This document shows positions 15,801-58,329 of a stretch of 64,000 nucleotides of DNA, one piece after another (positions within the stretch are counted from its first letter, which is position 1; each line of letters begins with the position of its first letter). The translations under genes and the position numbers were made by a program. Below the pieces are notes generated by a model. The model was given only the letters and a program-made list of their open reading frames with translations, searched no databases and was not told the origin of the DNA. Source of the stretch: Fimbriosthenelais zetlandica (Eukaryota); contig OZ365110.1 of the NCBI GenBank assembly GCA_977030845.1, positions 18,972,001 through 19,036,000 of the forward strand. The letters run 5' to 3'.

Positions 15801-18800
15801 CAGTTCTTCCCAAAGGGAAACTAACTCTAGAGTTCACAATATTTACAATATTTTGTCTGTTCTTTTTTTATACTGCACTTGACATTACCCCTCTGTTTAG
15901 GCATATTTGAATTTTCTGCATTGTATGCACTACGTATAGAAAGGGTTTTTTGTATGCACTACGTATACAATGGGTTAAACACTTTGATCTTTAAATACAT
16001 TATAATTATTCACTTGCGTTAGGAACTGCATTAAAACATAAGGTTTAACAAAAATTATGGAAAAAATTTTCAACACTGTGAACAAGTGACATTCACATCG
16101 CATTTAAAAGTAAATACATTATTTGCAATGTCAGATTTTTTCTATTTCCTTCAAATGTCAGATACATAGAGTATGAGTCTGCGACCTTGTTCTAACATTT
16201 AAGCCGAAAGCTACATCTTCTTTTTTTTCTGAATAAATTTAAAGAAACTGTATGGGAGGAAAACACATCCATCCATCAAGTAGAAGGCCATAAGGTTGAA
16301 CTGGTAAGGTCAAGTGTGGCACTGTTTTAAATAAGATACGAACATCAGACTCAAAATTTCCCTAAGGAGAAACATACATGTATGTATTGAAAAACGGCAT
16401 AGTCTGGACCGTATAGTGACAAATTTTCAAAATCATTTTAATCGACTGGACATGGAGCTCTAGTCCAATTACCGGCTGTAAATCTAAAATGCTAACTATA
16501 AAATATCTGATGGGAATTTAAATCAATCCAACGGGACGGTTTGAAATTGAAAGGATCAAAAGGCAGTAAACGGTAACGAGTGGCATATGGGGGAGCAAGC
16601 CGGCTGGGGGATGGGGTGTATTCTGGTTAGTGGACCTTGTAACCTCGGGGGGAAGCAACATGTCTACCGGTAAACTGACCGTGTCTGCCGAGGGTCAGGG
16701 GATTTACAGCCAGGTAATGAGGACGTCAAAGGCCATACTGCAGGACTGAACATCTGGCTCATTCTATCTGAACAGGGACAGAACATAAGCCCGAGAAAAT
16801 CCTACTCTCTACAGTCCTGAATGGGATGGTCCTTCCTTAGAGTAAAAGGAAAGGCCAAGAGTCAGCAAGAGTCTCTGGGGCTAAACCTGCATGGAATCTA
16901 TACTATAGACTTTTAGAAATGGAGGCACACGTGTATGAAATAACAGGACAAAAGTTCCCATGGATGGACTAATAATGAAAATGCGTTAGATTATCCTCAT
17001 CACTGAATCATGATGCACTCTCAGCTCTTTGGCAAGTAAATCGAGCCAAACCCCGAGAGAAGCGGTTAGAAATAGCGAGTGATTTAATCTGGGGAATAGA
17101 GGATAATTCATAGTGGTGGAATAAAGTGGATCCACCACTTAATAACCAGACATGGACGGCTCCCATGGACAACAGTGGTAAAACATGGTCAGAGCTGCCA
17201 TTAAGACTAATCAAGGCTTCTCCAGTTAGTGCCACATGGCTCATTTCCATAATTACCCTCTTTTCCACTCTACCACAGCCTTCCTTCCATCCTAGCCTAA
17301 CTAGAGACAATCCTGTATTTTATGTTTAGTTTTTTTACCCTTGATTCACGCTGATTGCCCTACTATAAGGGGGCATCCAATGAGTGGCATAGGAGTGATA
17401 AGGATATAGAGCTCTATTCCTGCATAATTATATATATTCTTTATATTTAGGGTCAGAAGAGAGCACTGCATGGGGATGGTACATTCAATGGTACAGCTTT
17501 ATTAATACATATCTTTAAGGCATCCACCTGAACCTCACTGTAATTGCAATTTGGATCCCTTCGTATTTATAGATTTATATCAATAAGTTTTCACTGAAAA
17601 CATTATCGCGGGGGCGGTGGTGGTGTTTTTATGGCCAGGTTATAAGTACTAAATGAAGGCAAGTCTAGCTATTTTTGAAAAGCAGGACACGCGAACTTGC
17701 TTAAAATAAATAAATAGAATTCCTAGAGCATAACAAACCGAGCATACGGCACATCGATGTAGAGTAAACCTAATGAATAAAGGGCATGAGAACAATGAGC
17801 ACTTTATGTGTATAAGAATACTACAGGGGCCCGTCCTGCCTCCCATTCATGTTCCCACTCCGCCTGTATAAACATCAGGAGGCACAATATTTCCTCCTTG
17901 GCCACCAGAGGCGGATGTGTGCAAGGCACCATGTGGACTGAGAGAAATGCTGAGGGGGGCAAAAGGCGGACCGAGCCACTCAGGTTATTCTGAACTGGGG
18001 GCAGGCTGAACAATAGCAAATTAGTGAACAAAATCCTCCACCAACTTTTCAGACTGAGCAGCACTACATTCATTGAATATATTTTATGTTCAAGGTCCCA
18101 ATCCCATAGACCAATAACATTTGACGTATAACACAGATTGTGAGTTGGTTCAGAGTAAAAGTACTATACATGAGGAACTCGTGCCAGGAATATAGAGAAG
18201 TCATCCAAGACCCATGCAGCGGTTCTTGTTAATTTTTTATTTTACTAGTCCAAGCCACTTGTGATTGTACATAGAGAGCCTTTCATCTGGCGGGGGCGAG
18301 GACAGATGGGGACAAATGTCAGATGCCCGAGGGCACACTAGTAATGATTTTGCATTAACGAAGTGTGAGTGTACCAGGGTGTGACACCTTCGGTGCCTAC
18401 AGTTGTTTGACCTCTGCCCTCACAGCACTTGCAAAAGTTATGGCTGAATGTAGCAAACACCGTGAAAGCCAAGAGGTTATTTTCCAGTCTGTTTTGTGTG
18501 GCAGAGGCCACGCAGTGTCCATTTCAAAGCTATCCCAATAGATTATTCTATTAATCTTTCAAGCAGATCCTTTCACCAAACTGTTCCTACCTTAAATGAA
18601 TAGAATTTCTCTCCATCCAAAACTTGATCCGATTCAATTCCTGATCTGAATGGATCTATGCTCATATCAGTTGAAGCAGACAGCAACTTCAGCCGAAGTT
18701 GAGAGAGAAAATTCACAAGCAGTCCCTCACAATGTAGACAAAATGACAGCCATGGCGGCCATAATCATACCATACAGACATCCATAGACTAGCGCCAGTC

Positions 18801-21129
18801 CCCATATTATATCCCCAGGGACACCCATACTTGGTGCCACAATTTGGCACGTCAAAGTATCAGGGGGTTTATGGAATATTACATAAGGTTGCACAGAATA
18901 TAGCCAACTCTAATCAGATACCACAGAGGGCATCAGGAACAATCCATTAAATAAATAGTTTTATGATCCACCACCGGGACCTGCCAGCAAACCGTTGGGA
19001 ACAGAAACCCGAATGTTCAATTTGAGTTAATAAAATTATGTCACTTCTTAAAATATTTAAATTTCAAAAGCAGGGGTGGGGGCAAGACTATGTTCCCCCT
19101 TGCCAGCCAAAATTGACCACTCACGGGAGGGGAGTATACATACGGCTATGCCTCTGTGCCTCCAGCACCCAAGGGCCACAAACCTGTGATCCATAGCGAA
19201 CCTTGGAGGGGGGAGACAGCTTTTTCCGATTGGCTAAATAATAACGGCAATACGCGCATGACCTTCTGCCTGCATCTGGCCCTTACTTCTGTCTGGCTCG
19301 GGACAGTGTCCCATGAAAAAGAAACACAGATTGACCAGACGTCCACAGGAGATCAATAAATAGCAGTGGAGAAGTCTGTCTCACATTTTCTGACCTAAAC
19401 TTTTTAGTCGGGCTGAGCATGCCATCGAGAGCCAAGATTTTGTTCAATTCTATTGGGTGGTATAAATGCCTCCCCTGACTATTATAGACGTAGCAGGAAG
19501 AGGAGCAGGAAGCAGGGTGGGCGGGACTGACCGGAGGTAGTGGTGGCAGATGGCTGATAAGGAAAGATTAACGGTCCTAATTAAGGACAACAAACCCCAC
19601 TCTGAAACGACCCCTGGCGACCTATGGTAGCATGGCATGTGGCTGAGGCGTGCCCCATAATATTCATGTCAGAGGGCTTGGGTTGTAGAGAGTGAGGACG
19701 TGGGTTGGGAGGAATAGCCAATGGGGTGTACAGCTGTAAGGGTATAGGGTACGTACTTTCAAAGGGAACTTTATGCGGTCCATTGGCTAAATAGCCTTGG
19801 TATATTTTTGGGGATTTTTGGAATTTGTGGAATTCTGAGACTTCTGAATTTGGGTCGATTTATCGGTTCAAACTGAATTAATCTTATTTTTAAATTGATA
19901 ACCATCGATAAATTTCCCTTTATAAGCACAAATTCCGAAAATGCTTCTCCTAAATCAAGATCACAAAGAACTACAAAGGTAAATTGAAAAGTAATTATCT
20001 AAAGAAACTGCTTGAGGAGCTGGAGCAGAGCAACAGCAGCAGCCCCAAACATGAAATATTATCCCTCCTTAGCGTATTTCCTTACCCCAAAGAAATCTTT
20101 CTTTATAATCAGGTTTCTTTATACCCCACCTCACGCTTAATGGCATATTTGCATGTCTCAAACAAATATAGTATTTGCCACGGCATTTGGGTAAACGGCA
20201 GACTACAAAACCAGAAGACACGAAACCTTTAAGGAGTTCTTGAGGATATGTTTTCCACAGTAATCGCGTGCATTATTTCTTATACTACTTTTTCCTATAC
20301 AGCAGAAAGGAAGCTATTTTGTACATGTCATTTAGGGAAACATGATCCTGAAGCTAGGAACACGATCTTTTGTATTTTTTTGCCATGCCTCTTGCATGTC
20401 TGGATTATGAATGGTCACACAATTTGCTGATGACTTTTCTGAGGGTCTGATTCAGTGATAACTGCTGGTCACTATCTAATCCACCTCCGCTTTCTCATAC
20501 GCAATCCAGCAGGTTTTTTTTGCAGTGCTCCGTGAAACAAGTATAGGAAAAGCTCTGATTACCAATTACCGGCTGACTGAGAGGTGATAGTTCAGTTCTA
20601 CCTGATTCCAGCGATCCTCATTAAAACCAGACTGTCATGCCATACTCCTGAGACATTTTAGGTCTCTCAGGGAATTTTCTAAATTGGCCAACTACATCAA
20701 GGGTAACCATGATATTACCAATAATAAATGTTCTGGTTTACCCTAAAAAATTGGATTTTTAGTAGAAGTCGTCTATATGCACGTGAGAGAGCTCTTTGGT
20801 TAAATGAGAGGGGATCTGGTGCCATCCATATCTGGTGTTATATAGTGGCCCCAATTACCTCCAGGCCTTAACAGACTGTCATGTACTACTGCTCATGACT
20901 AGATAACATGACAGAAAGCTTCACCGTGCTTCCATTGCAAAGACACTCCTACAGGCTATAGGATTTAGTGGGGACACTCCATAGAGGGGGTGGGGTGTAT
21001 ATGGGACTATCGATATAATTCACAGGATATGAGGCTATAGCAATGATTCTGGTACTTGTATACAGTTCAGAGAGGTATATATATAAGTTAGAGAGTATGT
21101 AGATCACTCTGAGATTATAACATTAATAT

Positions 21130-41432: not shown

Positions 41433-42114
41433 CTGCAAAAGGAGTTTTATAAATAATTTGGCAGTGTTATCATGGAAAAGGATAGGCCTGGTTTGTTTAA
41501 TTATAAATAGCCTTGTGACAGATATGTGTCACATCTAATATTGTAGAAGGTGATATAATAATGATGAGGATGAGGCCTACTCTAGGTTTTATTGGAGAGT
41601 CCAGCTCAGAGTATAATGACTGTAGGCCTACAATGTAGGCCCCTGTCTATGTGTTCGTATGAATGTCCAGTAGTGTTCTAAAGAGTGTCCCAAGGCGTTC
41701 TGTCTGTGAACCCAAAGGTATGGGTTTATATACAGTCAGGGAGCGAAGCCCCATACATTAATAATAATATAAAGATAAGGCTGCCTGCATCCCATGTCAT
41801 CAAAGCATTGATAATGACAATAGGGATGTCAAGCTTTTAAGATGCCACACCATGGATGCTCCTCAGATGTAGGCCTAGGCTGGCTTGGAAGTTGGATAAG
41901 GGTTAGATAGGCCTACGGCAATGCTAAATATTAGGCCTACTGAATAAACATAAGAGAGGGTAAGTTAGGATTATTGACAAACATATAGGTCTATAGACAT
42001 CGAGATTGGGTAACATTAGGCTACTAGCCCATATGCATACGTTACTGCGCATGACCGGAAATCGATTGCGCGCATTGCACTCTGGGAGCGTTTGAGGTTC
42101 CGGTGTAAACAAAG

Positions 42115-45100
42115 ATGGCGGTATCAACAAACGCCGGGATGAGCGCCGTAACTAATGAACCGATCGTAGAGCCAAACATCGAAGTACCAGGATCCATCAT
42201 TCATGGACCGTTTGAGGCGGCATCAGTTGCCGAGTTGAAGCGGTGGCTTCTTTGTCGCGGGGCATCGCTTAGTGGACGGAAAGCCGATCTAGTGAAGAGG
42301 TGAGTGTTGCCTGTCACCATAGATAACCGTGTCAGTAGGCCTTGTAAACAAGTTTCCGATCACGGAAAATGGGGTCGGGTCCTGGTCCCCGTTTCCCACG
42401 GCTTCCGGGTCCTGGTCCCCGGTAGCTCATGTCGCGGTCCCCGCTCCCCTAGTCCTGGTCCCCGTTTCCCTAGTCCTGGTCCCCGTTTATCACTAAGCAC
42501 GAAGTATTACCATAAATTGACTAAATATTATGTTTATGTAATATGTTTATTAACTGTTTATGTACCTGGTAGGCCCCTATGGATGTAGCATGTTATTTAA
42601 GGTGTTTAGGCACAAATGAAATATGATATTAGTAGCCTATGATTATTAATAGGTGTAATCCACAAACTGTCATCGCAGGTAAAAACTTCTGTCCCACTAT
42701 CGAACACATTCTTATTACAAAAAAAATATATTTCAAAACTAAGTGAAAAAAGGAAAACATGTAGAAAACAAATTGGACATTTTACAAATTTGAATTCCAA
42801 ATTTATATAAAAAAAGAAATGCCTCTTTTGTGGGGGTAACTTGAGAGAGTCTTTAAATGCCCTCAAGAGAGAAATTAAATGTAAAAATCCAGCATAGTGT
42901 AAGAGAAAATCATTAGTGACATACTTCAAAACACGTCCTTTTAGAATTTAAAAGGTGTTTTTTATTAGGTGCCTAGGGAAGACCCCGGTGAGTTGAGCCG
43001 CTCGGACAGTTGAGACACCCCTAAAACTACTATTTATAGTAATGAGTCAAAATGTTCGGGTTAGGTTAGGGTTAGGTAAACCCCTAAAAATCCCTAAACT
43101 CCAATAAAAACCCTTAACCCCAATAACTCCGTGGGAAATGGGAGAGATGGGAGAATACAGAGAAAAAGGACATGGGAAGGTCCTCCATAGCCCCCCACGC
43201 CCATTCTTCCAACCAAAAGCCTCAGTTTCAATTACTTTTAATATAATTTACAGCTTATGGCTCAACTCTCCCCAAGCCAATCTAACGCCATGCTCAACTC
43301 TCCTCAGTCCGAAGGAGATTTGAGCCAGTTGGCCATGTGTTATATATTAGGCAATTCTGAGATAGCCAATGACTTTGGATTTCATTTAGGGCCTACCCAG
43401 CCCTTAGGCCTATTTCAAATAAATAGTACTACTTTATAATAATAACAAAGTTCTTCATCTAAGTTGAATATTCACCCCGATGTCATGACCTAGAGCTCTA
43501 CGAAGTAATGTGATGCGATTGAGAAGACTATTGTATAACCCCCTCAGCCCGACTAGATTTTTATAGAGCGTGAGCATGACACGTGTGAACTGACACATAG
43601 GGCTTACATGTAACTCAAAGGCTGACGCATGTTAAAGCTGGCACTTATATCAAACGGTAATGGACACATAAAGCTGACACATATATATCAAAGGCTGACA
43701 CATGTATATCAAAGGCTGACGCATAGATAAAGCGACACATGTATATCAAAGGCTGACGCATAGATAAAGCTGATACATGTATATCAAAGGAAAAACATAT
43801 CAAAAGGCTATAACATATGAGAAGCTGACACCTATCAAAAGTTAACACATTTATAACAAATTCTAGCACAAAAACCAGGAAATCCTACAGTTCCCTCCCC
43901 TGTGCCAGTCTTCACCCAGTCCAATTTGGTTATTTCTTTCGGATAAATACTTATTTTGTTTGCAATTGGTGCTTATTTGTTAAAAAACAAATAAATTATA
44001 ATTTTCCCCTAGATTCCATTGTCCGTCAATACTTGATCCTACCAAAACGGAAAAAAAAAAAATATAAGAAAACCAAAAATTATTTATTCTGGCATCCAAC
44101 CTCCGACGTTTAAGAAAGTGTAGGCCTATAATCTATACATTTAATTTTGTGTGAACCTTTTGAAAATTTAAAATGGAAGATGAAAGGATGATACATTTCT
44201 TTGTGTTTTTTGGCACAAACAAAGATAAAAAGCTGTCACACTAGGTGCTGTTTTTCCAAGTGAGAGGTGAGGAAATTCCCCCTCTGATCGCTTCACACTC
44301 AGTGGTTAGCGCGAACATGAACAGAGGGCTGTCAGAAATGAGGCGCTCACACATTCCACTTTCATCTAGTCGCACTTCCCTCTGGGTGGCATATAAATAT
44401 GGGCTCCCTACCAGCTCAAGTCATCATTCTCTCATCATGCCTCCTACAAGCAAGAGTGACTGCGTCTACTGCCTGGAACCTGTGCGCAAACGTCAACAAG
44501 GTCTACAATGCGACCGTTGCGACAGATGGCAACATCGTGTGTGCCACACGAATATCTCCCAAGCCACCTATCGTCTGATGGTCAAGGGCGTGATTGACAT
44601 CCCCCACTGGTTGTGCCATGCCTGTCAAAGTGTGCCCTCGGTCCCAGCTCCACGGTGCCAAAGTAATTCTGCTTTGACAGAACTGGCACAATTGACAGGA
44701 CGTTCCCTACCTCCACCTCACTCACCTATTCCAGCACCACCCACCTCACCTGCTCCTCCATCACCCCCACCTACTTCACCTGCTCCTCAATCAGCCCCAC
44801 CTACTTCACCTGCTCCTCCATCACCCCCACCCACCTCACCTGCTCCTCCATCACCCCCACCCACCTCACCTGCTCCTCCATCACCACCACCCACCTCACC
44901 TGCTCCTCCATCACCCCCACCCACCTCACCTGCTCCTCCATCACCCCCACCCACCTCACCTGCTCCTCCATCACCACCACCACCCACCTCACCTGCTCCT
45001 CCATCACCCCCGCCACCCACCTCCACTGACTTCAATATCAGCATACCGATAGAAGACGCACGGGCACAACCCATCTTGGAGGACACAGCTATAACACCCA

Positions 45101-48100
45101 CCGACGTCCTGCCAGATGCCCCAACGACCTTCGAAATTATCCCCGGGGGAACGATAATGGGAGGTGACCTCCTCGCTGATACGACAGGATTCACCTACAT
45201 AAGGAAAGAGGTTCGCGGCACTTCAACCACCTGGGTCTGTTCAAACAAGAAGAAGTACAAGTGCCGCGGAACAGTGATCGAGAAGGATGGCTCGTTCAAA
45301 GCTAAGAACGACCACACCCACCAGCATGTGCCAGGCTTTGCTTTGAAGGCAAAGGCGCGGGCCTTGGTAAGTATTACTATTATATATTATTGTAGCATAT
45401 TTTGGTGAGGGAGTGGTTACTTTCATGCAGTCCAGATCAGTATATTCAATACTTCAGCAATATCATTAATAAGCACTGTACTTTTTTTCTTTTCAGACCA
45501 GGGAAGCAGCCAAGAAAGAAGTGTTTAAACCGGCCTCTAAGATTGTGGAGGAGACACTCCAGGTGTTAGATGTCGGGGACATCGACCTCCCGGACCCACA
45601 ACTGCTGAAAAGATCTACAAACCGTTGCCGAGAGAAGCTTAGGCCCCATCATCCAAAAGATGTGACAACAGAGGTGAGATTTACAACCAGTTATACTGAT
45701 CACCAAAAACATTCTTTTTTACGATTTCAAGTTACGAAAGAATTCTTATATTCTTCCATACTGAATAAGCATACTATAATTAATTCTTTCAATGTTTTTT
45801 ACTATTCAGCTGAATCTCAACTTCATCCCAACGGATTTTCTACAAAGCGATATTCGACGAGACGGACAGCGCCACTTGGTATTTGCGACACCTACTCAAC
45901 TAGAACATCTGCAGGATTCGAAGATTTGGTTTGTCGACGGGACTTTCAAGGCTGCAAGGGACCCTTTCGTACAGTTACTGAGTATCCACAGTTTTATTAA
46001 ATCTGGTGAAATTCTCAAACAGATTCCCCTTTGCTTTATTTTAATGTCTAAGCGTAAGAAGTCTGATTACCGTTCTGTATTTCAATCTATTTTAGATTTG
46101 GTACCCCGTGAACCCCGTGTGGAAGAGGTCGTGGTTGATTTTGAGAGGGCGATTTGGTCTGCCCTGAAGGACTGCCTGCCATCTGTGTCAGTGCATGGCT
46201 GTTGGTTCCACTGGTCCCAGTGCGTCTTCAGGAAGGTCAAAGAGATGGGTCTGCGTAACGCGTACGTGAACCAAGTCAGTGTCAGGACGTACATCAAGGA
46301 GTTGATGGCACTACCCCACCTGCCAGCCAACCATATCCTGCCTGCCTTCGAGGCCCTTGAACAGCAGTGCCCCCAAGATGCCCGACTACTGGACCTGACG
46401 TCATACATCGGCGACACCTGGGTGCGGAGCCAGTCCAGACCACCAACCTCATGGTCCAACTTCAAGAGGACAATCCGCACCAACAACGACTGTGAAGGCT
46501 GGCACCTTAGACTAAACCAACAGCTGCCCCACGACCACCCCAATCTCTACATCCTGCTGCCTCTTCTCCACAAGGAAAGCCTCCTCCTTCCACTTCAGGT
46601 GAAGCTGGTAAGCCAGAAGAAGATCTACAGGCATCAGAAGAAATCGACGCTCCAAAGCCAGAAAGCCCTGCAAGACCTCTGGAAGAAATATGAAGATGCC
46701 CAGCGCACCATAACCACCAAGGAGTACCTCCAAGCCTGCGCATCTCTAAACGAACGTAAGTAAGACACAGATAATCTACCTGTATTCGATTTCTTGCTAA
46801 TTTTATCGATTTCTTGCTAATTTTATCGATTTCTTGCTAATTTTATCGAAAAATTTTACCATCTCATAATCCCCCCCCCCTCCCCCTCCCCTCCCCCCCC
46901 CCCCCCGCCCGTCCCGTGTTATTATTGACCCCCCCCCCCTCCTCCTCCTCCTCCCCCCTCCCCCCGCCCCCGCCCGTGTTATTATTGACCCCCCCCCCTC
47001 CTCCTCCTCCTCCCCCTCCCTCCGACTGATACTTATAATCCGATAATATTGTAATATCATTGAAGTACGGTAGCCTAGGCCTACTGAACCACTAAGTGGC
47101 AGGATAAGATTTAGTATGGAAGACAGCACTCTTGTGATAGCCTTAGGCTGTATTAAATTTATAAGGCTATGTCTTGTTATTTCTATATTGTATATGTTGA
47201 GACTACTACTGTGTAATTCTATTTTGTATTTATCTGTCGGCACTATCTATTGTGTGATTGTTATAAATGTCTATTATATGTATATTTCTTGATTGTATAG
47301 AATTTGTTTCATGTAAATAAAAACGAAAACTTGTCTAAGGAATCCGCTTTGTGCTTGTTATGTTTATACACAAAAATACTTAATAAAAATACTGATATAA
47401 ATTCCAAAGCCTAAATTTACTCCCTTCAATTTTTTTTAGTACAAGGATTACCTATGGGTAGGCCTACTATAAATTTGTCTCAATTTTCCCCACCAACAGT
47501 AGGCCTACCGATATGCCCATACTGATAGTCTACTATGCCCAGCCCAATGATAGCCCCAAATGTTTTCAATTCAATGCCGCACCGTTGGTTATACTATTAT
47601 TTGACCTAATCTTAATTGAACAGGTGGGTTTTAAGTGGAACAGACCTATAGTTACCTACCTATTTCTATGTTTTAAGGTAAGCATTAGCGAATCCCTATG
47701 GTAGGCTAGACCTGTGCTTCCACCTGAAGGAACTCCTTTTAACTACCGGGGTACGGTATCGGTGACCTGCCTTATTTAAACATAACAGATCATAACAAAA
47801 GTCCCCAGGCTACCCGTACATGTAGGACTCTAGTCTAGGTGTCTACATTATTTACTTATCCTTCTATCGAGGCCTGTATATACTTTATATCCCACCACTC
47901 TAAAAGTTAAATAAATGTGATTCTTTCATTGAGTACGGTACCGGTACCGGTACAGCCCGAAACTTATTATATTATCGCTCACATAGGTCTATGCTAATTT
48001 TCGCTCCATCTGAGCAAGGATAGCCCCATTAAAAAAGTGAAGACCATCAATAGTTGTAGGACCTTCTTGTCAATATCCTATCAACACCCGAATTCGTATA

Positions 48101-51100
48101 CATGTACGTTAATATAGAATTAATAGCCACCGGGGACCATGACAAAAGGGCTGGGGGCCTTGACCCTCGGGGACCACGGGAAGCGGGGACCACGGGAAAC
48201 GGGGACCACGGGAAGCGGGGACCGCGACCAGTATTCCGGAAAATCACAGATAACTGTCTGAAAGTGTTTATTTATTGCTATTTCGAGGTCAGAAATGAAA
48301 TTTACAGAGAATTCTGCCACTGCTAGTGATGTTCGGACAGGATGTCATGAAATAGATTTTATAATATGGGGGCCCGCAAAATTGTAATGTCATAAGACAT
48401 ACCGGGTAACCGGGCCCGGGGGCGGGGCCTAGAGGCTAGATCACTACCAGCCCTATCTCTTTTCATAAATCTCCCAGTCCCGAAGCCGATGGCGATATCG
48501 ATGATCAACCGGTGGGATTATCAGTGGCATAAGGTCTAATAACTATACTGATCTATTAATATAAACTCTCTACAGTCACAGTATGGGATGGTACTTCCCA
48601 ATCCCTGTAGCACTAGCACTGTCTCAGTGTCTGTAGCAGACTGCAGAGTCAGCCTGTCAGTCTCTCGGGCTATGAATGAATGAATGAAAATGGTTTATTT
48701 GACTCACAGAGTACAGTGTATGTCAGCACCTTGTTTACAATAAGAAAAAGACATTTTATCCATATTTTGTATAAAGTTGCAAATCTTGTTAGTGGGATTT
48801 TCCCTATCTTCAATATTACATTGAGTTTTTACATTGAGTACATGCCTATGTCAACTTGACAGATGTCACTAAATGTCATATTAGTATAACTGATCAGGAA
48901 TGGGAATGATCTCACTCAAATATGTGTAGTGTAAGTTAGTAAGCCTAATCAATTTTTTTCAGTACTAATGGAATCATTGAAAATTACCAGAAACCCCTGG
49001 CCATGGGGATTCAGATCTCTATTGACTATTGTTCAGTAAATCTGTAATAAGTCTAGATCTACCAACATTCGTTAGGCCTACATATTTGTATTGTGCTAGA
49101 TTCTATTTGGAACTAAACAAGTTTTTCTGAAATAGTTGATTAATGCATTTATGAACACAGATTTTACAGGACTGGTTGTGTCGTCTGTACCTAATAGTCA
49201 TGTTTCTCTATTTATAGGTGCAAAATTTATGCAGCTGACGCAGCTAGAGCCAGTCGAGTGACTGATCCAGACAGACCAGTGGCAGAACCTTCATCTGTAC
49301 TATCTGTGGAGGCTCTCCCTACAACCGGCTGGTCTAAGTCCATAGTATCAATACCTACAGGCTTTGGGCAGTCGTCCATATACAAACATGTTGGTGGAAA
49401 AACAGAGAAACACAGGGTTTCGGGCTACAACATGTTTAAATGTCATAAAGTGGAAAACATGCAAGTTTGCCAGCTAGAAGAAGTCCCATCTTTATTTAGA
49501 ATAAAGAGTGTCGTTGGAGCTAGCTTCACCAAGGACAGGTATAAAGTCGCTGTTGATTTGAATGAAAATGGCTTTGTAACGAAAGGGAAGTGTGCATGTA
49601 AAGCCGGAGCCTTAGGGCAGTGTAAGCATCTTGTGGCCACCCTCTACCAACTTAATGATTACAAGGAGGCAGGCCTGAAAGAAATCCCAGAATCCATCGC
49701 CTGCACAGAGAAACCCCGTGAATGGGGGGTTAAGAAATCAAAACAATCAGGGATAACGAAATCGTTTCAAGATCTTCACTTCATCAAACATATCCCAGGA
49801 AAGACGCCCAGGAGTGTAGAAAGCCAGCAGCGTAGAACAGCATACTGTTGCCTAGCCCCCAAGAACATTGAAATGCCTCCTCACCAGATAAAAGAATTAG
49901 GGACAAGCTTACAGCCCTATCGGCATATGTGGAGTACCCTTCTTCTGCAGGTACATTACTTTTGCATAATATTGTTAATTAGTCTATTATAACTAGTCTG
50001 TTATTAATTATCTTTACCTGGAATAATGATGACAGCGAAAGATCTTAAAATTTTATTAATCAATTTATTTATTTTCTTATGTGGCTGCATTAGAACTGAA
50101 TTTATCTCAAATTAATACAGGTTAATATCAGGTTATTAATAATATTAGTGTTTCATAAGTTAACGATTAACATGCAATATGTCTTCCCAAAATATTTCAT
50201 ATTGTTTTCATAGATAAATATGTATAATATTAAGTATGTAATCCTCACAGAGCATCAATGAAGTTCCAGAACCCAGTCGAGATCATCCCATTGAGTCAGC
50301 CACCACGCCCATCACTGAAACTACCATTGATATACTAGACATTGAGGTAATTTTAATCGTATTACTGCTATTAAAATTAATATTTAATGTATGACATGAA
50401 ATTAATGTCTGTACATGACTAGTGATTTATATTAGCATGGTAGGAATGTATGTACGTCTGTATATTATTATCCCATAGATAATTATATATATTTGTATTT
50501 ATTCCTGACAGGAAATCAATGAAGGTCCAGAAGCCAGGCGAGATCTCCCCTTTGAAACAGCCGCCACACCCACCTCACCACCCAAATGTAAAAGGTCCCG
50601 CATGTCTGCCATTGAACCACTGCCACTTCAAGAGTGTGAAAATCAAGTGCTGGGGATTTTGACACGCCCTGCAGAGGCCACTGAACCTGCGACTGAGCTA
50701 CTAGACCTTGAGGTAATTTTAATTTATTCTATTATTGTTATTAATATTTAATGTCTGTATGACTATTGATTTATATATATATAAGCATGGTAAAACTGAA
50801 TGTACTTATTGAATGATGTATATTTTATATAAAAAAAATAACATAAGCACAATGTCCGAGTGGATGAGTGATTAGCATATATTATATATGGAGCAGGGAC
50901 TGACCATGGTTGGTGAGGCCCTCTAACACTAGGGGGCCTCAGTGTCCTATACAGGTGGAACAGGTGGCTTACATCATCAGTCTTTATATATCCATTTATG
51001 TGAAATATAAATAGTAATTATTAAACCCTCACAGGAAATCAGTGAAGGTCCGGATCCTCACATTGATACAGCCACCACGCCCATCACTGAAACTACTACT

Positions 51101-52304
51101 GAGCTACAAGCAGCAATAGAAGAAAAAACCCGAGGGCAGTCCAGAAATAAAGATTGGTTCCGTGAGAGAATTGGTGAGTATTCATGATGCATGATAATCC
51201 AGTCTTTTTACATCTTGGAACCATTCTTTTAATTCAAAATTTGTTTACCAGGTTAACATTATGGATTATAATTTAAAACAAACTATTAGAAACTATTATA
51301 ATATAATAGTTATGGTTTGTTATGTGAATGTGTATCTCCTGGTATGAATTCTGGTTCCAAGATGTTGAGGGACAATGCATAGCAATTTTATGCGGTGCAA
51401 AACCAATTTGTATAGTATTAAATATAATTTGTATAGGTATTCACTGTTTATTTTTTTACCCTTGTTCTGCCTGGCTGCACCAACGTTTATTGAAGGAATA
51501 CATGGCATGGTAGTTTTACATTGCAAATTGTGATGTGGTACCGAGGTTTTACTTGGCTCTGTATTAATTAATATAATTTCACAAGTGCCATATCCATTTT
51601 CAGGGAGAATCACAGCTTCGATCGTTGGTCAGATCGTAAAGAGGCGGGAGCAGACCCCTCCCGATGTGCTTGTCAAAAAAATCATGGGCTACGAGACGTC
51701 ATCTGCTGCAACATCTGCTGCTTGTACCCATGGCATCACACATGAAGATGAAGCGAGGCAAGCCTACATCTTACACAACCAACAACAGGGTGTCACACTT
51801 AATGTGGAAGAAAAGGGACTGATCATCGACACAACAAGACCATGGTTTGGTGCTAGTGTTGATGGTGTGGTGATTATAGATAGTCCCACACCAGATACAG
51901 GTATCATTGAAATTAAGTGCCCATATTTTCCCAATTCTAGTACTGTAGTACCAAGTTCTGTTCTTGAAATCGCTGTTCAGCGTAAAGATTTTTATATCAA
52001 AGCAGATGGGGCTATCAACAGGAGGCACAACTCTTTCTTTCAAATACAAGCACAGATGGGTATTTTGAACCAGAAGTGGTGCGACTTGGTAGTCTATTTT
52101 TGCTGTAAAGGTCATGGGATCTGTGACTTATTCATCAAGAGAGTCCAATTTGAGCCTGATGTATACAAAACTATCCTTGAGAAAGTAGACAAGTTTTACC
52201 TGGAAGGGATAGTCCAAGAACGGAAATTCAGGCGAGTACAGCGGGGGCTTAAGTTGTATCCAAATTCGGAGCGATTTAAATACACAGGTGGAAAAGAAAA
52301 CTGA
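42115..52304 (+). CDS. Transposon accessory protein: SAP domain - SWIM zinc finger - acidic/Thr-Pro linker - YqaJ-like (lambda exonuclease, PD-(D/E)xK) domain, about 684 aa
   Basis: Exons 42115-42299, 49218-49950, 50251-50346, 50512-50712, 51035-51173 and 51604-52304, all GT-AG and frame-consistent (2055 nt, no internal stop). SAP: SVAELKRWLLCRGASLSGRKADLVKR. SWIM: CACKAGALGQCKH. YqaJ: IEEKTRGQSRNKDWFRERIGRITAS, HEDEAR, GASVDG, IEIKCP, FQIQAQMG. Confidence 0.88.
43615..43845 (+). repeat. Degenerate tandem array of about 20 bp ATATCAAAGGCTGAC(A/G)CAT-like units upstream of the MULE gene
   Basis: Repeated AAAGGCTGAC/AAAGCTGAC-CACAT/CGCAT-TATATC motifs read directly. Confidence 0.75.
44437..46763 (+). 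CDS. MULE transposase with N-terminal PHD finger, proline-rich repeat and FLYWCH-type zinc finger, about 686 aa
   Basis: Exons 44437-45366, 45497-45673 and 45810-46763 (2061 nt, GT-AG, in frame). PHD C4HC3: CVYC...CDRCDRWQHRVC...WLCHAC. FLYWCH-like: FTY...WVCSNKKKYKC...HTH. MULE catalytic core: WFVDGTFK, VVVDFERA, GCWFHWSQ, RTNNDCEGWH. Confidence 0.9.
44734..45026 (+). repeat. Coding minisatellite, 30 bp unit x about 9, encoding TSPAPPSPPP
   Basis: CCACCCACCTCACCTGCTCCTCCATCACCC-type units, in frame within the MULE exon 1 ORF. Confidence 0.93.
46786..46849 (+). repeat. 20 bp tandem repeat x3 (TCGATTTCTTGCTAATTTTA) just after the MULE stop codon
   Basis: Read directly; followed by duplicated poly-C tracts containing CCCGTGTTATTATTGACCCCC (about 46870-47020). 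Confidence 0.9.
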
Positions 52305-52357
52305 GGGGGAAATGTAAAGTATGAATGACAAATGAAATATTTCTATTTGGGTACACC

Positions 52358-52715
52358 AAAATGTGGCATATTCAGCTAATGATCGTAGATTAACATGTGG
52401 CTTCTTCACCTAATGATCGTAGATTAAAATGTGGCTTATCCAGCTGTGATAGATTAACATGTGGCACATCCACCTAATGATTGTAGATTAAAATGTGGCT
52501 TATCCAGCTGTGATAGATTAACATGTGGCACATCCACCTAATGATTGTAGATTAAAATGTGGCTTATCCAGCTGTGATAGATTAACATGTGGCATATCCA
52601 CCTAATGATTGTAGATTAAAATGTGGCTTATCCAGCTGTGATAGATTAAAATGTGGCTTATCCACCTAATGATTGTAGATTAAAATGTGGCTTATCCACC
52701 TAATGATAGTAGATT
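52358..52715 (+). repeat. Tandem array of alternating 30 and 34 bp units (64 bp higher-order repeat) downstream of the YqaJ stop
   Basis: CAGCTGTGATAG recurs at 52441, 52505, 52569 and 52633; both subunits share AGATTAA(A/C)ATGTGGC. Confidence 0.9.
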
Positions 52716-54484
52716 TATAAAATCTTGTTCCCAGTGTTTACCGTCCGCCATATTGGTACTAGGTAAATTATAATTTTGTAACAATAATATGAATTATTAA
52801 ATTCTGTATTCAGATGACTGTATCTTGTCTATTAATGAATTTGGATGATGATTGTTTTGAATCAGGAAGGAAAGTGGGTTCCTGCCAGACTCCAGTATAG
52901 GCCTGAGGGCTAAGCCCTCCCTTGGAAGTTCCAATTGTTTTATCATAGACATATAGCTACATGTCTATGGTTTTCTTATTGACTATCAGTGGCTATTGTT
53001 ATAATGACATATTACATATTCACGGGGAGAAATTTAATATGGAATTCCATATGAGTTAGAACATATGCGAGCTATGGTAGGGTGTTGGGTGAGAACAAAG
53101 GGTTGATAAGAGTTATTGTATGGTAGATATTGGACTGGAGAGCTAAACTAGTCATTTCAAATTATTGACATTCATTATTATTTATACAATTATAATATAA
53201 TCATAACAGAAAGATGATTCTATAATCACAATTCTTTAATAATAAACAACATTATTTTCCACTTCATGGTATGGTAGTTGCAATAAAATATATATTATAA
53301 TGAACATTCGGTTTTGCTCTTGTTGTCTGATAGCAGTATTTGACACAGTATTTGAAATAATTTAAATATAAAATCATCTTAGACATATCTTAATTTATCT
53401 GCGAACATTTCTGCATAAACGCTACTGATGACAGACATCGAATCCGCCAGTACTGGGATTGGTACAGAAAGACACTCATTACCTAAGACCAAGAAATGTT
53501 TAAATTCCAAGCCCATTCAGCCAGGAAGCTGTAAGGAGAATCACGTTTAGGTCATAAATGTGCCTGAATACCATAACTGCTATGATAAATCCAATGGTAT
53601 AACTAATTACTTCATACACTATATTTGATTATTTGAATATAAGAAATATTTAGAGATTGGATCAATGTTGGTGATGTATTGTTAAACAAAAGTTAAATTT
53701 GTTTTTAAGAATACTTCTGTATTCATAATACATGTATACATACAAAAGGTTCAATAATTTTGCTCAAAAAATATTATTAAAATTCTAGCTCTATAATTAT
53801 ACCAAAATAACACCCAGATTTATCCACTGGATATAAACATACATGTACATGTGTTTCTGAATTAGAGATACCAAAGAACATCTTCATCCAAACGTGGAAC
53901 AAACATATCTATAGACAATTGCTGATGCTGAGTATATTCCGCATTTCCCTTTATGTCTACATACTCATCTCAACCTGCTTATTATCTACATTTTTATTGA
54001 ATTTACTGAATAGAATATTACAATATCCAAATTAAATTATTTGAGGCTTCTTAAATGCTACCGACAATAGTACTCTGACATTTCCCTGTATGTGCATATT
54101 CAAATTTACTTTCTCACATTCACCATAGAATATTATGTTCTATTCACAATGCTCACCCACCACCAACTCAGCCCACCTCTGAGGTGAGGGTTCGGACCAG
54201 TGATGGCTGATAGGATTCATCTGGAGATTTATTCAGATAGTTTCTTATCAGTATTTTAAATGGAAATTGTATTAGGTACTTATAGATGAGACCATAATAA
54301 ACCACGGGCGAAATCATTTTTAGGACATCTGGAAACAGATTCAAATTTTTCATTTGGGTGTGAAACACCTACATCAGCCCGGGGGGTGGGGTGGGGGGAT
54401 GCACGTTGACTAATGAATTACAATAATGACATTAACTTGCGGCCCGCTGTTATGTGAGGTTCTGCAATATTGTTACTAAAATCA

Positions 54485-57400
54485 TTATTTGTCAGATGCA
54501 ATCGGATCAGTCGTGAAGTTTACCAGATAGCAACATATAACCCAAATCTTATTGAGATCAGCAGCCATGGTATTTGGAAATATATATTTAAGTATGCGAA
54601 AGTTCTTAACACGCTCAATAACACGTTCAACATGGATCCGGACAGAGGCTATCCTCCTTGTTGCTACCTCTTCTTCTGGGGAGAGCTGTGATTTTCCACT
54701 CATGAAAGGGGGGATGTTGAGTCCTACCCTCTTTTGTGCTAGGTATTCGTCTATGAGGAATCCCCTATCCGCCATCACTGAATCTCCTTCCTCCAGCTTG
54801 TCGAGTAGTCCACTGTTTTCTGTGATCTGTTTATCAGACATGCGTCCAGGGACTAAATCAGAAACAAAACTCACAAAACCATTTGGTGCTATGCCTATGA
54901 GACCCTTGGCCGTGTTGTGACTTTTGTAGGATGAATATGTCTCTGACTGAACTCGCAAATGGGATGGCGTCTCAATGAAAAGCTCTGTGCAGTCCAATAT
55001 TACGCGAGTGCAAGGGTAGGACTGCTTGAAGCATTCGGGCATGTGCTCCTGGAGTAGTGGTCTGGTTGGCCATATTGTCAACTGCCGGAAGCGGCGAGAC
55101 ATCAGGTCGACATAAGTGCGAAATATTCTACTCACTGTTGTCGCATGGATACCAAATCTGGAAATTAGAATGAAATTCAGATTCAGATTTTTATTTGTAT
55201 GAGTCATTGAATATCAGGTATATAATAGGTATATGGAGTATGTGGTTTTTCATGTGATGGAAAAGTTGAGGGTTGAAAGCTTGGCAAATTTATTTTGCAA
55301 CATATTTTTCACAAAATTTGAAATTGGGATCCTTAAGGATTTTTGTAAAGAGTTGCTTGTTTTTTTATTTTATTTTAATTATTATTTTAACAATAATTTT
55401 ATTTTATTAAAACAATAAACAGTCTCTTTGGAATCAGCAGTATTTACTATTTTAGGTAGGGTAAGTAGGCTAGTAAATTCATATATTTTTTCTGGCCTTA
55501 GACACTAAAATTAGACTAAATTTCTATCCTAGTTATAATCTATTTAATTATTACGGGACATGGTACGTTTAACATTCTAGAACTTGAGTAACAAGATGTC
55601 CACATACCTGAATGCAAGGTCCTCAACCAGTAGGCCAACTCTCAATCTTGCCAGCACAAGCAGAAGCTCATCTTCAGAAGACAGAAGGCGGTTTTTTCCT
55701 CGTGAGGGGCTTGTTTTGATATTGGGTTGAGACCCCCAATATTGTATCTTATCCAAATCATGTGCAAGGAAATTGTGCAGTACGAGAAATTCGTTGTATG
55801 TAGAAAAGCCAGTGTAGAACCGGATAGCGTCTGGATTTTCCTTGATGGCCTGTATGCTTAGGATTTTCGTGAAGAAATCCTCGTTTACTTTTTCTCTATG
55901 AATTATGGACATATGGTACTTTCTTTTCCATGTCCTAACTTCTTTTAACATCACCCCATTGGACTTTTCTGCCTCAGATAGTTTTGATTCCGTCTGTTTC
56001 AATCTCGTCGTCAGTTCAGAAAGTTGTTGTTCTAAGTCCTCGATTTTCTCTGCCATCATTTCTATAGTCCTATTTTTATCATTTAGCAGGCACTTTAAGT
56101 TATCTTTGTCCATCGGCATGGCGTAGGAATGACTGTGTGTGATGTCGAGATCACTGGGCATACTTTGTACGTGGTCATCACCTGAAAAAAAACATGCAAA
56201 TATTAGTATTAGGCCAAACAGAATAATACCTTTGTTTGGAATAACATGAAATTGGGGGCAATGGTGGGGGGGGGGGGGGGGGGGGTGGTTGTCATGAACC
56301 AGTCCTATATTATCTGTAGTGTCTTTTTTGTTTCTAACCCCAGGCGGTGGAAGGAAAACTTCACCCGATCAGGCAAAAAGTTATTTTTGTTTCAGATCCA
56401 CAGAAAGCGGAGATTTCAATTATTTAGAGAACAGTCTGAACTTTAGAATTTTTATATTTTTTGTTAAAAATATACCATGGTTATATTGTGTTAACCTGAA
56501 TATAGATTATTTCATAGATATAACGATAATGTGGTAGGCCTAAACTGAAGATTACTTTATAGATATGATACAATAATAATAATGTGGGAGGCCTAAGCTC
56601 AAGATTACTTTATAGATTATAATGATAATGATGTAGGCCTAAACGGAAGATTACTTTATAGATACAATAATAATAATGTGGGAGGCCTAAGCTGAAGATT
56701 ACTTTGTAGGTAAAATGATAATGTTGTAGGCCTAAACCGAAGATAAATTAGGCATATAGTGTAATAACTAGTGTATAGGTATAATGAAAATGTGGTAGGC
56801 CTAACCTGGAGATAAAACAAAGATGGATAAATTACATTAGATCTATAGATATACCGGTAATGATACTATGAGCAAAAAGGTGAAAACATGGGGTAGACAG
56901 CTAATAGATCTACTTCTTTTTATTGGAGCAAAACTTAGACTATAGGCCTACTAAATCTAGGCCTATGTAGGTTTTCGTGGGTAGGCAACTTAAATGTTAC
57001 TAGTAGTAGAGGGAAAACAGTGGGCGGGGGCAGGGCCGTGGAGGATGGTGGGGATGAGGGTCGAAATTATATAGCCTAGCACTAGGCTATAGGCCTACTT
57101 TTCACGAGAAATCAAGTAGGCCTAGCTAATGGTCAAGTAATATGAAAGCCAAAAAGGGGATCAGTAGGCCTACTAACTTAATACACTGTATACAGTATAA
57201 AGAATCTCATCCCCGCCCCTGTCAACTTCAAGTTTCAGTAGTGTCAGGTGTTGACTGACAGTGCCACTGCAGCCAGAGTCAGTGACAGTGTCAGTGGAGT
57301 GGCCCGAGTGGCCCATGCGACATTCAGTCAATATAAACATGGATACTTACATAATTCAGGTTCATCCGTTGTCGGAACTAATCTCTCTATCTTCCTCCTT

Positions 57401-57681
57401 GCGTATTCGGGTTTGGAAGTAGAAGAGGATTTCATGGGGAACTCTGTGGGAACAGATACCATGTACGTCTTCTTTCCGCCCTTGAAATGCAGGCTGCACA
57501 CTCGGTGTCCAGTCTGGGAGGGTTGAAATAAACTGAACTTACCAGTTTCTCCAACCCTACCGATGTTGTTTCTCCATATCCTTTCTGTTTTGACGTCTTT
57601 TGGAAATTTATAAAAACATAAGTGGCGATCTCGCTTGCTATTTGTATAGCAGCCGGGGACACAACATGTGTAGCCCGGCAT
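54485..57681 (-). CDS. THAP - coiled coil - HTH - DDE (Harbinger/DDE_Tnp_4-type) transposase, about 525 aa
   Basis: Exons 57681-57351, 56181-55608 and 55157-54485 (1578 nt, GT-AG, in frame). THAP: [11 protein letters not shown]...FYKFP...W...RVCSLHF...VPTEFP. HTH: [32 protein letters not shown]. Catalytic motifs: [30 protein letters not shown]. Confidence 0.92.
56525..56815. repeat. Degenerate tandem array (about 6 units of 45-70 bp) in transposase intron 1
   Basis: AGGCCTAA.C.GAAGATTACTTT core at about 56536, 56589, 56635, 56683, 56728 and 56797. Confidence 0.8.
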
Positions 57682-58329
57682 GGCGCCGCCGTTTTCGCGC
57701 CGGAAATCGTGGTGCGACGTCTGACGTCGTTGTACCACAACTCCCACAATGCAATGCGCGGTCGAAAAACAAGATGGCGCGTGTGCATACGGGCTATTAA
57801 GGAGACATGGGTAGCCTATAGGAACATGAAAGGGATTTTCAAATCTGGCATGAGTAGGCTAGGCCTAGGCTAAATAGCCCTAGATTCTAGAGAACAAAAA
57901 AATTGAATTCGGAGCAAAGTTCCCCCAAATGTGATTTATTAGCATAGGCCTACGGTGTAGCCTAGCCTTTAGGCTACCGGTAGCCTACTTTGGTATGACC
58001 AGAAATTAAAACGCCCGTTCCTTTATCGAAATCATGACATAGGGGTCTAAATCATTAGGGACCTTGAATTAGGCTATAGGCTAGGGCCTAGGCCTCGGCC
58101 AATCCTGGAATTTATAAATTTAGGACTAGGCGTAGGCCTAGGCTAAAGCCTAGGCTATCCTACCAGTACCCTAGGACTAGGCCCTACCTAAGACTAAGTA
58201 GCCTAGGCCTACGCATAATGCGTCTAGGCTACTTAGGTATAGTCCTAGGCTAGGCCTACTGGTAGCGGCATAGGCCTAGGCCTACAACCTAGGCCATGCA
58301 ACATCCAACCATTTCACAAATTTATAGCG

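Follow-up and report, generated by a model that had tools for sequence, protein, structure and literature searches.

Which kind of genetic unit occupies positions 42025-57796 of the window analyzed here, a stretch of 64,000 nucleotides (64 kb) of Fimbriosthenelais zetlandica DNA (contig OZ365110.1, positions 18,972,001-19,036,000 of the forward strand), and what would a nuclease of the lambda-exonuclease type do inside it? The segment is 15.8 kb long, is bounded by inverted ends, and carries two convergent genes that encode a predicted transposase on the minus strand and a predicted nuclease on the plus strand. The best explanation for it is a single ISL2EU-type element, a cut-and-paste DNA transposon of the PIF/Harbinger-ISL2EU-Spy superfamily, whose nuclease gene hosts a nested Mutator-like element in its first intron. 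We attach a probability of about 0.85 to this explanation as a whole; within it, only the identity of the element is regarded as well supported. The kind of element is already known as ISL2EU, and the copy in the window adds one member. To our knowledge, no eukaryotic cut-and-paste transposons other than ISL2EU elements have been reported to carry a lambda-type exonuclease.

The domain set and the convergent layout of the two genes match the published description of ISL2EU, as the initial annotation had proposed in calling the segment a two-gene element of this type (PMC4482050, PMC4122938, PMC9179366). According to these publications, ISL2EU elements occur in animals only and encode a transposase with THAP, HTH, and DDE domains and a second open reading frame (ORF) with a YqaJ exonuclease domain. 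They duplicate 2 bp of the target (AT, in the context A|AT|T), their ends usually start with GG, and their average length is about 4.8 kb. The inverted repeats are reported to span 6-259 bp (PMC4482050), and the GG start is usual but not universal. The window copy shares with these elements, for example the ISL2EU-1 families of Repbase (PHIS superfamily), the transposase composed of THAP, HTH, and DDE_Tnp_4 domains, the YqaJ domain in the second ORF, the inverted ends, the animal host, and a candidate 2-bp palindromic duplication in an AT-rich target. It differs from them in its size, in ends that start with AG or GC instead of the usual GG, in the one mismatch of its AT duplication, and in the triplication of a linker exon.

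The layout is repeated among the relatives, whose loci are numbered L001-L006 here; L002 and L003 are two overlapping metagenome contigs from different samples, and L004 is from Ptychodera flava. A nuclease gene that converges with a gene for a THAP/HTH/DDE transposase is also found in four elements (L001, L002/L003, L004, and L005), and L006 is a nuclease locus without a called transposase. When a nuclease exon was used as the query, a word-index search returned four relatives and an exhaustive search returned 3570, many of them 560-690 aa long with a C-terminal nuclease domain. These relatives, all labelled uncharacterized, include proteins from Ptychodera flava, Mercenaria mercenaria, and Lingula anatina. 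The search with a transposase exon yielded 1382 relatives at E ≤ 1e-10, which come from ticks, cnidarians, a brachiopod, and insects. One of them, with 62% identity, is named ‘Isl2eu-1 cs’, and this name is the one piece of evidence that suggests a placement of the transposase with ISL2EU rather than with PIF/Harbinger, Spy, Pangu, or Nuwa. Two papers on bivalve genomes count YqaJ, THAP, and HTH_Tnp_4 among the transposon-related families with expansions or contractions (PMC7826175, PMC10225492).

The ATG of the transposase gene is at 57681, 115 bp from the right end. The gene is predicted to consist of three exons that are separated by GT-AG introns and join into an uninterrupted frame of 525 codons. 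Exon 1 (57351-57681, minus strand) holds the start codon and the THAP zinc finger. Exon 2 (55608-56181, minus strand) encodes a coiled coil and the first half of HTH_Tnp_4, whose second half lies in exon 3 (54485-55157, minus strand) together with DDE_Tnp_4, its putative catalytic residues D357, D432, and E479, and the stop codon. HTH_Tnp_4 is thus divided by the second intron and becomes contiguous once the exons are spliced. Pfam matches THAP at 2.6e-12 and DDE_Tnp_4 at 3.4e-48. The protein keeps all 53 of the 53 positions that are near-invariant (at least 93% conserved) among 95 relatives, including D357, D432, and E479.

The splice junctions of both genes were placed by homology; the spliced proteins were analyzed locally, and the database searches were run with single exons as queries. 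Across the junctions, the spliced proteins align with their relatives without gaps, for example at LAFR| in the HTH domain and at WFRERIG|RITAS where the nuclease domain starts; introns occur at these two positions in the L002/L003 relative as well. The coding sequence of the two genes amounts to 3.6 kb over nine exons and contains no stop codon within the frames, no frameshift, and no lost splice site. The initial annotation had described uninterrupted ORFs with catalytic motifs, and this description stands: both frames are open, and D357/D432/E479 of the transposase and the D-ExK site of the nuclease are kept.

The ATG of the nuclease gene lies at 42115, at a distance of 90 bp from the left end; the gene is predicted to comprise six exons, again with GT-AG introns throughout, and an uninterrupted frame of 684 codons. 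Exon 1 (42115-42299, plus strand, as are all exons of this gene) contains the start codon and a SAP-like domain. Exon 2 (49218-49950) contains a SWIM-type zinc finger and, downstream of it, a conserved CTE...W...P stretch. Three tandem-duplicated mini-exons follow, of which the first is the 32-codon linker of exon 3 (50251-50346), the second is the 67-codon linker of exon 4 (50512-50712), and the third forms part of exon 5 (51035-51173), where the YqaJ domain also starts (TRGQ...W..R.G). Exon 6 (51604-52304) carries the remainder of the YqaJ/lambda-exonuclease domain, with S536, D538, E554, K556, and Q598, and the stop codon. The tandem triplication covers the linker exon and part of its intron (50226-51173), and exons 3, 4, and 5 each start with [ES]I[NS]E.P[ED]; the L002 homolog has a single linker exon. 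Exons 3 and 4 are whole-codon exons, and skipping them would preserve the frame.

Of the domains named in the initial annotation, Pfam recovers THAP, HTH_Tnp_4, DDE_Tnp_4, and YqaJ in the window copy, places SAP just below its cut-off, and returns no SWIM match in the nuclease even at E = 1. The SAP match of exon 1 has an E-value of 5.8e-5 and 23.1 bits at a cut-off of 23.9 bits. The L002 counterpart of this exon reaches 27.8 bits, and SAP is matched in 11 of the 34 long nuclease relatives, with 1.1e-10 as the best E-value. Pfam SWIM finds the L002 homolog weakly (E = 0.019) and 3 of the 34 long relatives. The SWIM signature itself is present in exon 2 as C187-x-C189-x7-C197-x-H199 (CxCx7CxH) and is nearly invariant among the relatives. 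Structure prediction for exon 2, based on an alignment of 32 sequences, gave a model with a mean pLDDT of 79.7 and blocks above 87 across residues 31-160. Its best match among solved structures is the SWIM region of ZSWIM8 (PDB 9rwz; Foldseek E 4.8e-3), to which VIA-align superposes it with a Z-score of 9.6 and an rmsd of 2.3 Å over 100 residues at 21% identity, while the runner-up reaches a Z-score of 4.2. Nuclease residues ~106-220 (44-158 in the model) correspond to the fold of ZSWIM8 residues 111-215, and both share CxCxnCxH. The predicted SWIM assignment is thus supported by the signature, by its conservation in the family, and by the modeled fold. In contrast to the nuclease, ZSWIM8 is the substrate receptor of a ubiquitin ligase, and the comparison gives no sign of a common function beyond the fold.

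The YqaJ domain spans exons 5 and 6 and is matched by Pfam YqaJ (8.4e-12) and Viral_alk_exo (1e-6). All 34 long relatives carry it. The SAP-SWIM-YqaJ architecture ascribed to the partner protein in the initial annotation is real and widespread (YqaJ in 34/34, Pfam SAP in 11/34, SWIM Cys/His residues nearly invariant). The columns of D538, E554, and K556, which form the predicted D-ExK active site, are invariant or nearly so in the 34 long relatives, and D538/E554-x-K556 align with GASPDG...EIKCP of LHK-Exo (PDB 3syy). The window domain has the D-ExK site and the W..R.G.ITAS and QxQ motifs in common with lambda exonuclease, LHK-Exo, and YqaJ (PMC3239189). In lambda exonuclease, Arg28, Ser35, Ser117, and Gln157 form the pocket for the 5′-phosphate (PMC3239189). 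Their putative counterparts R450, S457, S536, and Q598 are kept in the window nuclease, where they sit in R-x-G-x-I-T-A-S, S-x-D, and Y-x-x-Q motifs with a lambda-like spacing; the Arg, Ser, Ser, and Gln of the pocket are equated by motif position and not by alignment. There are also differences from these enzymes. The domain makes up the C-terminal third of a 684-aa protein and is preceded by SAP and SWIM modules, the element encodes no annealing-protein partner, and a serine stands at the position of LHK-Exo Tyr134. The conservation of the SAP-SWIM-YqaJ architecture, of the catalytic residues, and of the 5′-phosphate residues across distant animals argues for an enzymatic role of the protein, which is probably active as judged from its sequence.

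The ends of the element are defined by two pairs of inverted blocks. The left terminal inverted repeat TAGCCCATATGCATACG (42025-42041, plus strand) and the right one TAGCCCGTATGCACACG (57780-57796, minus strand, read inwards from 57796) are 17 bp long and identical at 15 of 17 positions, a match that 200 shuffles of the two 150-bp terminal regions never reached. A second block common to both ends, GCGCATTGCAYTSTGGGAG, measures 19-21 bp and lies 45 bp in from the left end and 37 bp in from the right end. It is represented by GCGCATTGCACTCTGGGAG on the left (42070-42088, plus strand) and by GCGCATTGCATTGTGGGAG on the right (57741-57759, minus strand). The initial annotation had reported matching terminal repeats with convergent multi-exon genes starting just inside them, and the 15/17 ends and the ATGs at 90 bp and 115 bp bear this out.

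The termini placed in that annotation are further supported because the end sequences of L002/L003 and of the Ptychodera element resemble those of the window. The L002/L003 element is ~4.5 kb long, as pieced together from its two overlapping contigs, and has perfect inverted ends of 83 bp (L002:413-495 and L003:3062-3144). These ends share TAGCC..GCGCCATYTTG..GCGCGCA..TGGGAG with the window ends, mainly with the right one. In the Ptychodera element, 73-nt arms that are 79% complementary are found at 7878-7950 and 15781-15853 and start with A-AT-AG. A terminal motif, A-AT-AG(C/A)C, is thus common to families whose nucleases are 44-47% identical, and a GCGC...TGGGRG block 40-70 bp further in is partly common. 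The annotated transposase gene of the Ptychodera locus (13907-19482) extends beyond the inverted repeat at 15781-15853, and this gene model probably includes foreign upstream exons.

The register of the target-site duplication was derived by alignment with the L002/L003 and Ptychodera ends. At the left junction (42024-42026), the candidate 2-bp duplication is either CT at 42024-42025, which fits the A|AT|T register with one mismatch, or TA at 42025-42026, which fits perfectly. At the right junction (57795-57797), it is either AT at 57796-57797 followed by T, which is the canonical register, or TA at 57795-57796. The TA register, one base further in, therefore fits both ends perfectly, whereas the AT register has one mismatch. 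Because both dinucleotides are palindromic, the two registers are undecidable from one copy. The ends of L005 and L001 were sought in order to fix the register, and none was convincing; self-BLAST of the 64-kb window found no further copy of the element or of either flank.

The subterminal blocks resemble the binding-site consensus of STAF/ZNF143, YWCCCRNMATSCMYYRCR (PMC5006282), at 17 of 18 positions in the right block (57741-57758) and at 16 of 18 in the left block (42071-42088). The right site is the sole match with one mismatch in the window. This resemblance was kept out of the explanation, since the counterparts in L002/L003 and Ptychodera, as compared by eye, do not fit the consensus; it may be lineage-specific or due to chance. 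Separately, AAGATGGCGGT, which we take to be a YY1-like motif, overlaps the start codon of the nuclease gene (42112-42122). The right end contains GCGCCATCTTG at 57770-57780, and GCGCCATTTTG is found at the same place in both L002/L003 ends. With at most one mismatch, the YY1-like motif has five matches in the window, where 0.48 are expected.

Much of the unusual length of the element lies in nuclease intron 1 (42300-49217), which has 6918 bp, while the homologous intron of L002 has less than 300 bp. The nested Mutator-like element (42371-48236, approximate ends, plus strand) lies within this intron in the orientation of the nuclease gene and, with ~5.9 kb, accounts for ~37% of the 15.8 kb. 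It contains two ORFs on the plus strand. The first (44245-45408) encodes PHD/C1-like and FLYWCH fingers, and the second (45792-46763) encodes a MULE domain (Pfam: FLYWCH 2.5e-7, MULE 4.6e-11). The ORFs are flanked by GGTCCCCG-rich inverted repeats at ~42371-42490 and 48168-48236. These are adjoined by an exact 8-bp direct repeat, CGGAAAAT, as the candidate target duplication; an 8-mer match of this kind is expected by chance ~0.6 times in the region searched, and taken alone the repeat falls short of significance. Another candidate duplication, AGATAACYGT, with one mismatch, was rejected in favor of CGGAAAAT, since it does not abut the inverted repeats. At 45780-45997, two ORFs of the nested element overlap in different frames, which places an intron or a frameshift there. 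A proline-rich in-frame repeat of 30 bp is located at 44737-45022. The element also contains a C-rich 59-bp tandem repeat (2.6 copies, 46871-47024), and a strong negative GC skew extends over 44-48 kb; both features set it apart in composition from its host element.

Additional length comes from two tandem arrays. The 64-bp array (52358-52715, 4.9 copies, 96% matches) directly follows the nuclease stop codon in the 2.2-kb spacer between the convergent genes, and the 94-bp array (56504-56744, 2.5 copies) lies in intron 1 of the transposase gene, where homopolymer tracts occur as well, among them a poly-G tract near the array (56254-56288). The size of 15.8 kb, compared to the average of ~4.8 kb, is explained by the Mutator-like element, these two arrays, the homopolymer tracts, and the triplicated linker exon with its introns, as well as by long introns.

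Can this copy still move? Its coding sequence is intact, and its mobility and autonomy are unproven. The designation “apparently intact” in the initial annotation holds for the coding sequence and does not extend to the rest of the element, as the ends are short and imperfect, the arms are offset by an indel, the duplication is ambiguous, and a Mutator-like element of ~5.9 kb lies in intron 1. Several observations weigh against a mobile element with two working proteins. The terminal repeats match at 15 of 17 positions only, an 8-bp indel sets the two arms apart, and their spacers between the end blocks do not align. The AT duplication expected of ISL2EU is present at the right junction only, with CT on the left, and the ends begin with AGCCC (or GCCC) and not with GG as in most ISL2EU elements (PMC4482050), a start that is likewise absent from the L002/L003 and Ptychodera ends. 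Poly(A)-signal motifs (AATAAA/ATTAAA) are found on the strand of the nuclease gene from 47152 onward, after the last Mutator-like ORF and near the 3′ end of the nested element, which could, lying in sense orientation, truncate the nuclease transcript. The nuclease itself departs from the family at S595 (codon TCT), three residues before Q598, where a tyrosine is found in every one of the 34 long relatives and in 118 of the full set of 132. An interpretation of S595 as a defect private to the window copy was downgraded: the nearest relatives carry Cys or His at this position, so the serine is a feature of a sub-branch and not private damage. Moreover, replacing the corresponding Tyr134 by Ala in LHK-Exo leaves ~25% of the wild-type rate (PMC3239189).

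Taken together, such observations could describe a coding-intact relic that no longer moves. Its ends would have decayed, the Mutator-like element would block the full-length nuclease mRNA, and the copy would supply transposase in trans at most, or nothing. We regard this as a substantial possibility, although it falls short of an even chance. It gains weight from the three mismatches in 2 x 19 bp (ends plus the duplication in the AT register), from the 8-bp indel and the unrelated spacer in a family in which the L002/L003 ends are perfect over 83 bp, and from the sense orientation of the Mutator-like element with its poly(A)-signal motifs. The coding sequence speaks a different language: its 3.6 kb in nine exons show no stop, frameshift, or lost splice site, and the strongly conserved residues are complete in the transposase and, with a single exception, in the nuclease, a state that is unlikely after a long neutral decay. 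Short modular ends also fall within the range of 6-259 bp reported for ISL2EU (PMC4482050), and long introns that bear transposons are, as a matter of general knowledge, commonly spliced. Three situations would fit open frames next to mismatched ends: the ends may never have been perfect, the insertion may be recent, or the genes may be under selection.

If the ISL2EU-type element is taken as a working transposon, a mechanism can be proposed from what is established for DDE transposases and for exonucleases of the lambda type. Binding by the THAP finger and by the HTH domain would set the transposase on the terminal and subterminal blocks, and the DDE domain would cut and join the element, duplicating 2 bp of the target. 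The partner would be a working lambda-type 5′-to-3′ exonuclease that is tethered to the DNA or to the transposase via its SAP and SWIM modules. It would resect the 5′-phosphorylated ends that are left at excision. Subsequently, the resected donor break would be repaired in a homology-directed manner from the sister or homologue that still carries the element, and the element would thereby be kept on moving. Our best guess is that the nuclease resects the donor site, to which we give about one chance in three. This role is favored because the 5′-phosphate pocket typical of end-dependent exonucleases appears conserved and because the transposase has DNA-binding domains of its own.

PIF/Harbinger transposons such as Harbinger3_DR may be compared with the ISL2EU-type element. 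Both have a related DDE_Tnp_4 transposase with an HTH domain and two genes, and in PIF/Harbinger both proteins are thought to be necessary. There, however, the place of the nuclease is taken by a Myb/SANT DNA-binding protein that has no enzyme activity, the transposase lacks a THAP domain, and the duplication is 3 bp long (TWA) (PMC4482050, PMC9179366).

The main alternative to donor-site resection is a TnsA-like cutting of the second strand. The nuclease would then be a second catalytic subunit of the transposase, a PD-(D/E)xK enzyme that cuts the 5′ non-transferred strand while the DDE protein cuts the 3′ strand; in a variant wording, it would be obligatory and would handle the 5′ strand or flanking ends with a 5′-phosphate. 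In favor of such a subunit, D-ExK is invariant across the 34 long relatives, so that selection acts on catalysis and goes beyond binding. Further points in its favor are the constant pairing of the nuclease gene with a transposase gene in L001, L002/L003, L004, and L005, and the THAP domain of the ISL2EU transposase, which makes a partner unneeded for end recognition, unlike in Harbinger. Tn7 offers the model, as TnsB and TnsA likewise combine a DDE protein and a nuclease of the PD-(D/E)xK fold in one element. The likeness is one by description only, and TnsA is a site-specific restriction-type endonuclease, not a lambda-type exonuclease. The pocket residues R450, S457, S536, and Q598, equated by motif as they are, point to the resection of free ends and not to site-specific nicking, and we consider a second catalytic subunit unlikely. 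That the host keeps both genes for itself in an early stage of domestication, as the coexistence of open frames with mismatched ends and a mismatched duplication might suggest, is highly improbable, since the copy retains its two genes, its two ends, and the typical convergent layout, like mobile relatives, and a recent transposon insertion in the nuclease intron speaks against a protected host gene.

For work on the ISL2EU family, the copy in the window is not the best one to start from, given its nested Mutator-like element and its imperfect ends. It does add a clean predicted gene model for both proteins and a terminal sequence that is common to families whose proteins are only 44-47% identical. 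In the searchable literature, the role of the second ISL2EU gene is still called unknown (PMC4482050), and against this background a coding-intact pair of genes is useful raw material for reconstitution. Should the nuclease turn out to be a second catalytic subunit, the pair would be a eukaryotic counterpart of the division of labor between TnsA and TnsB in Tn7, and ISL2EU would use a mechanism that has so far not been described for any eukaryotic cut-and-paste transposon.

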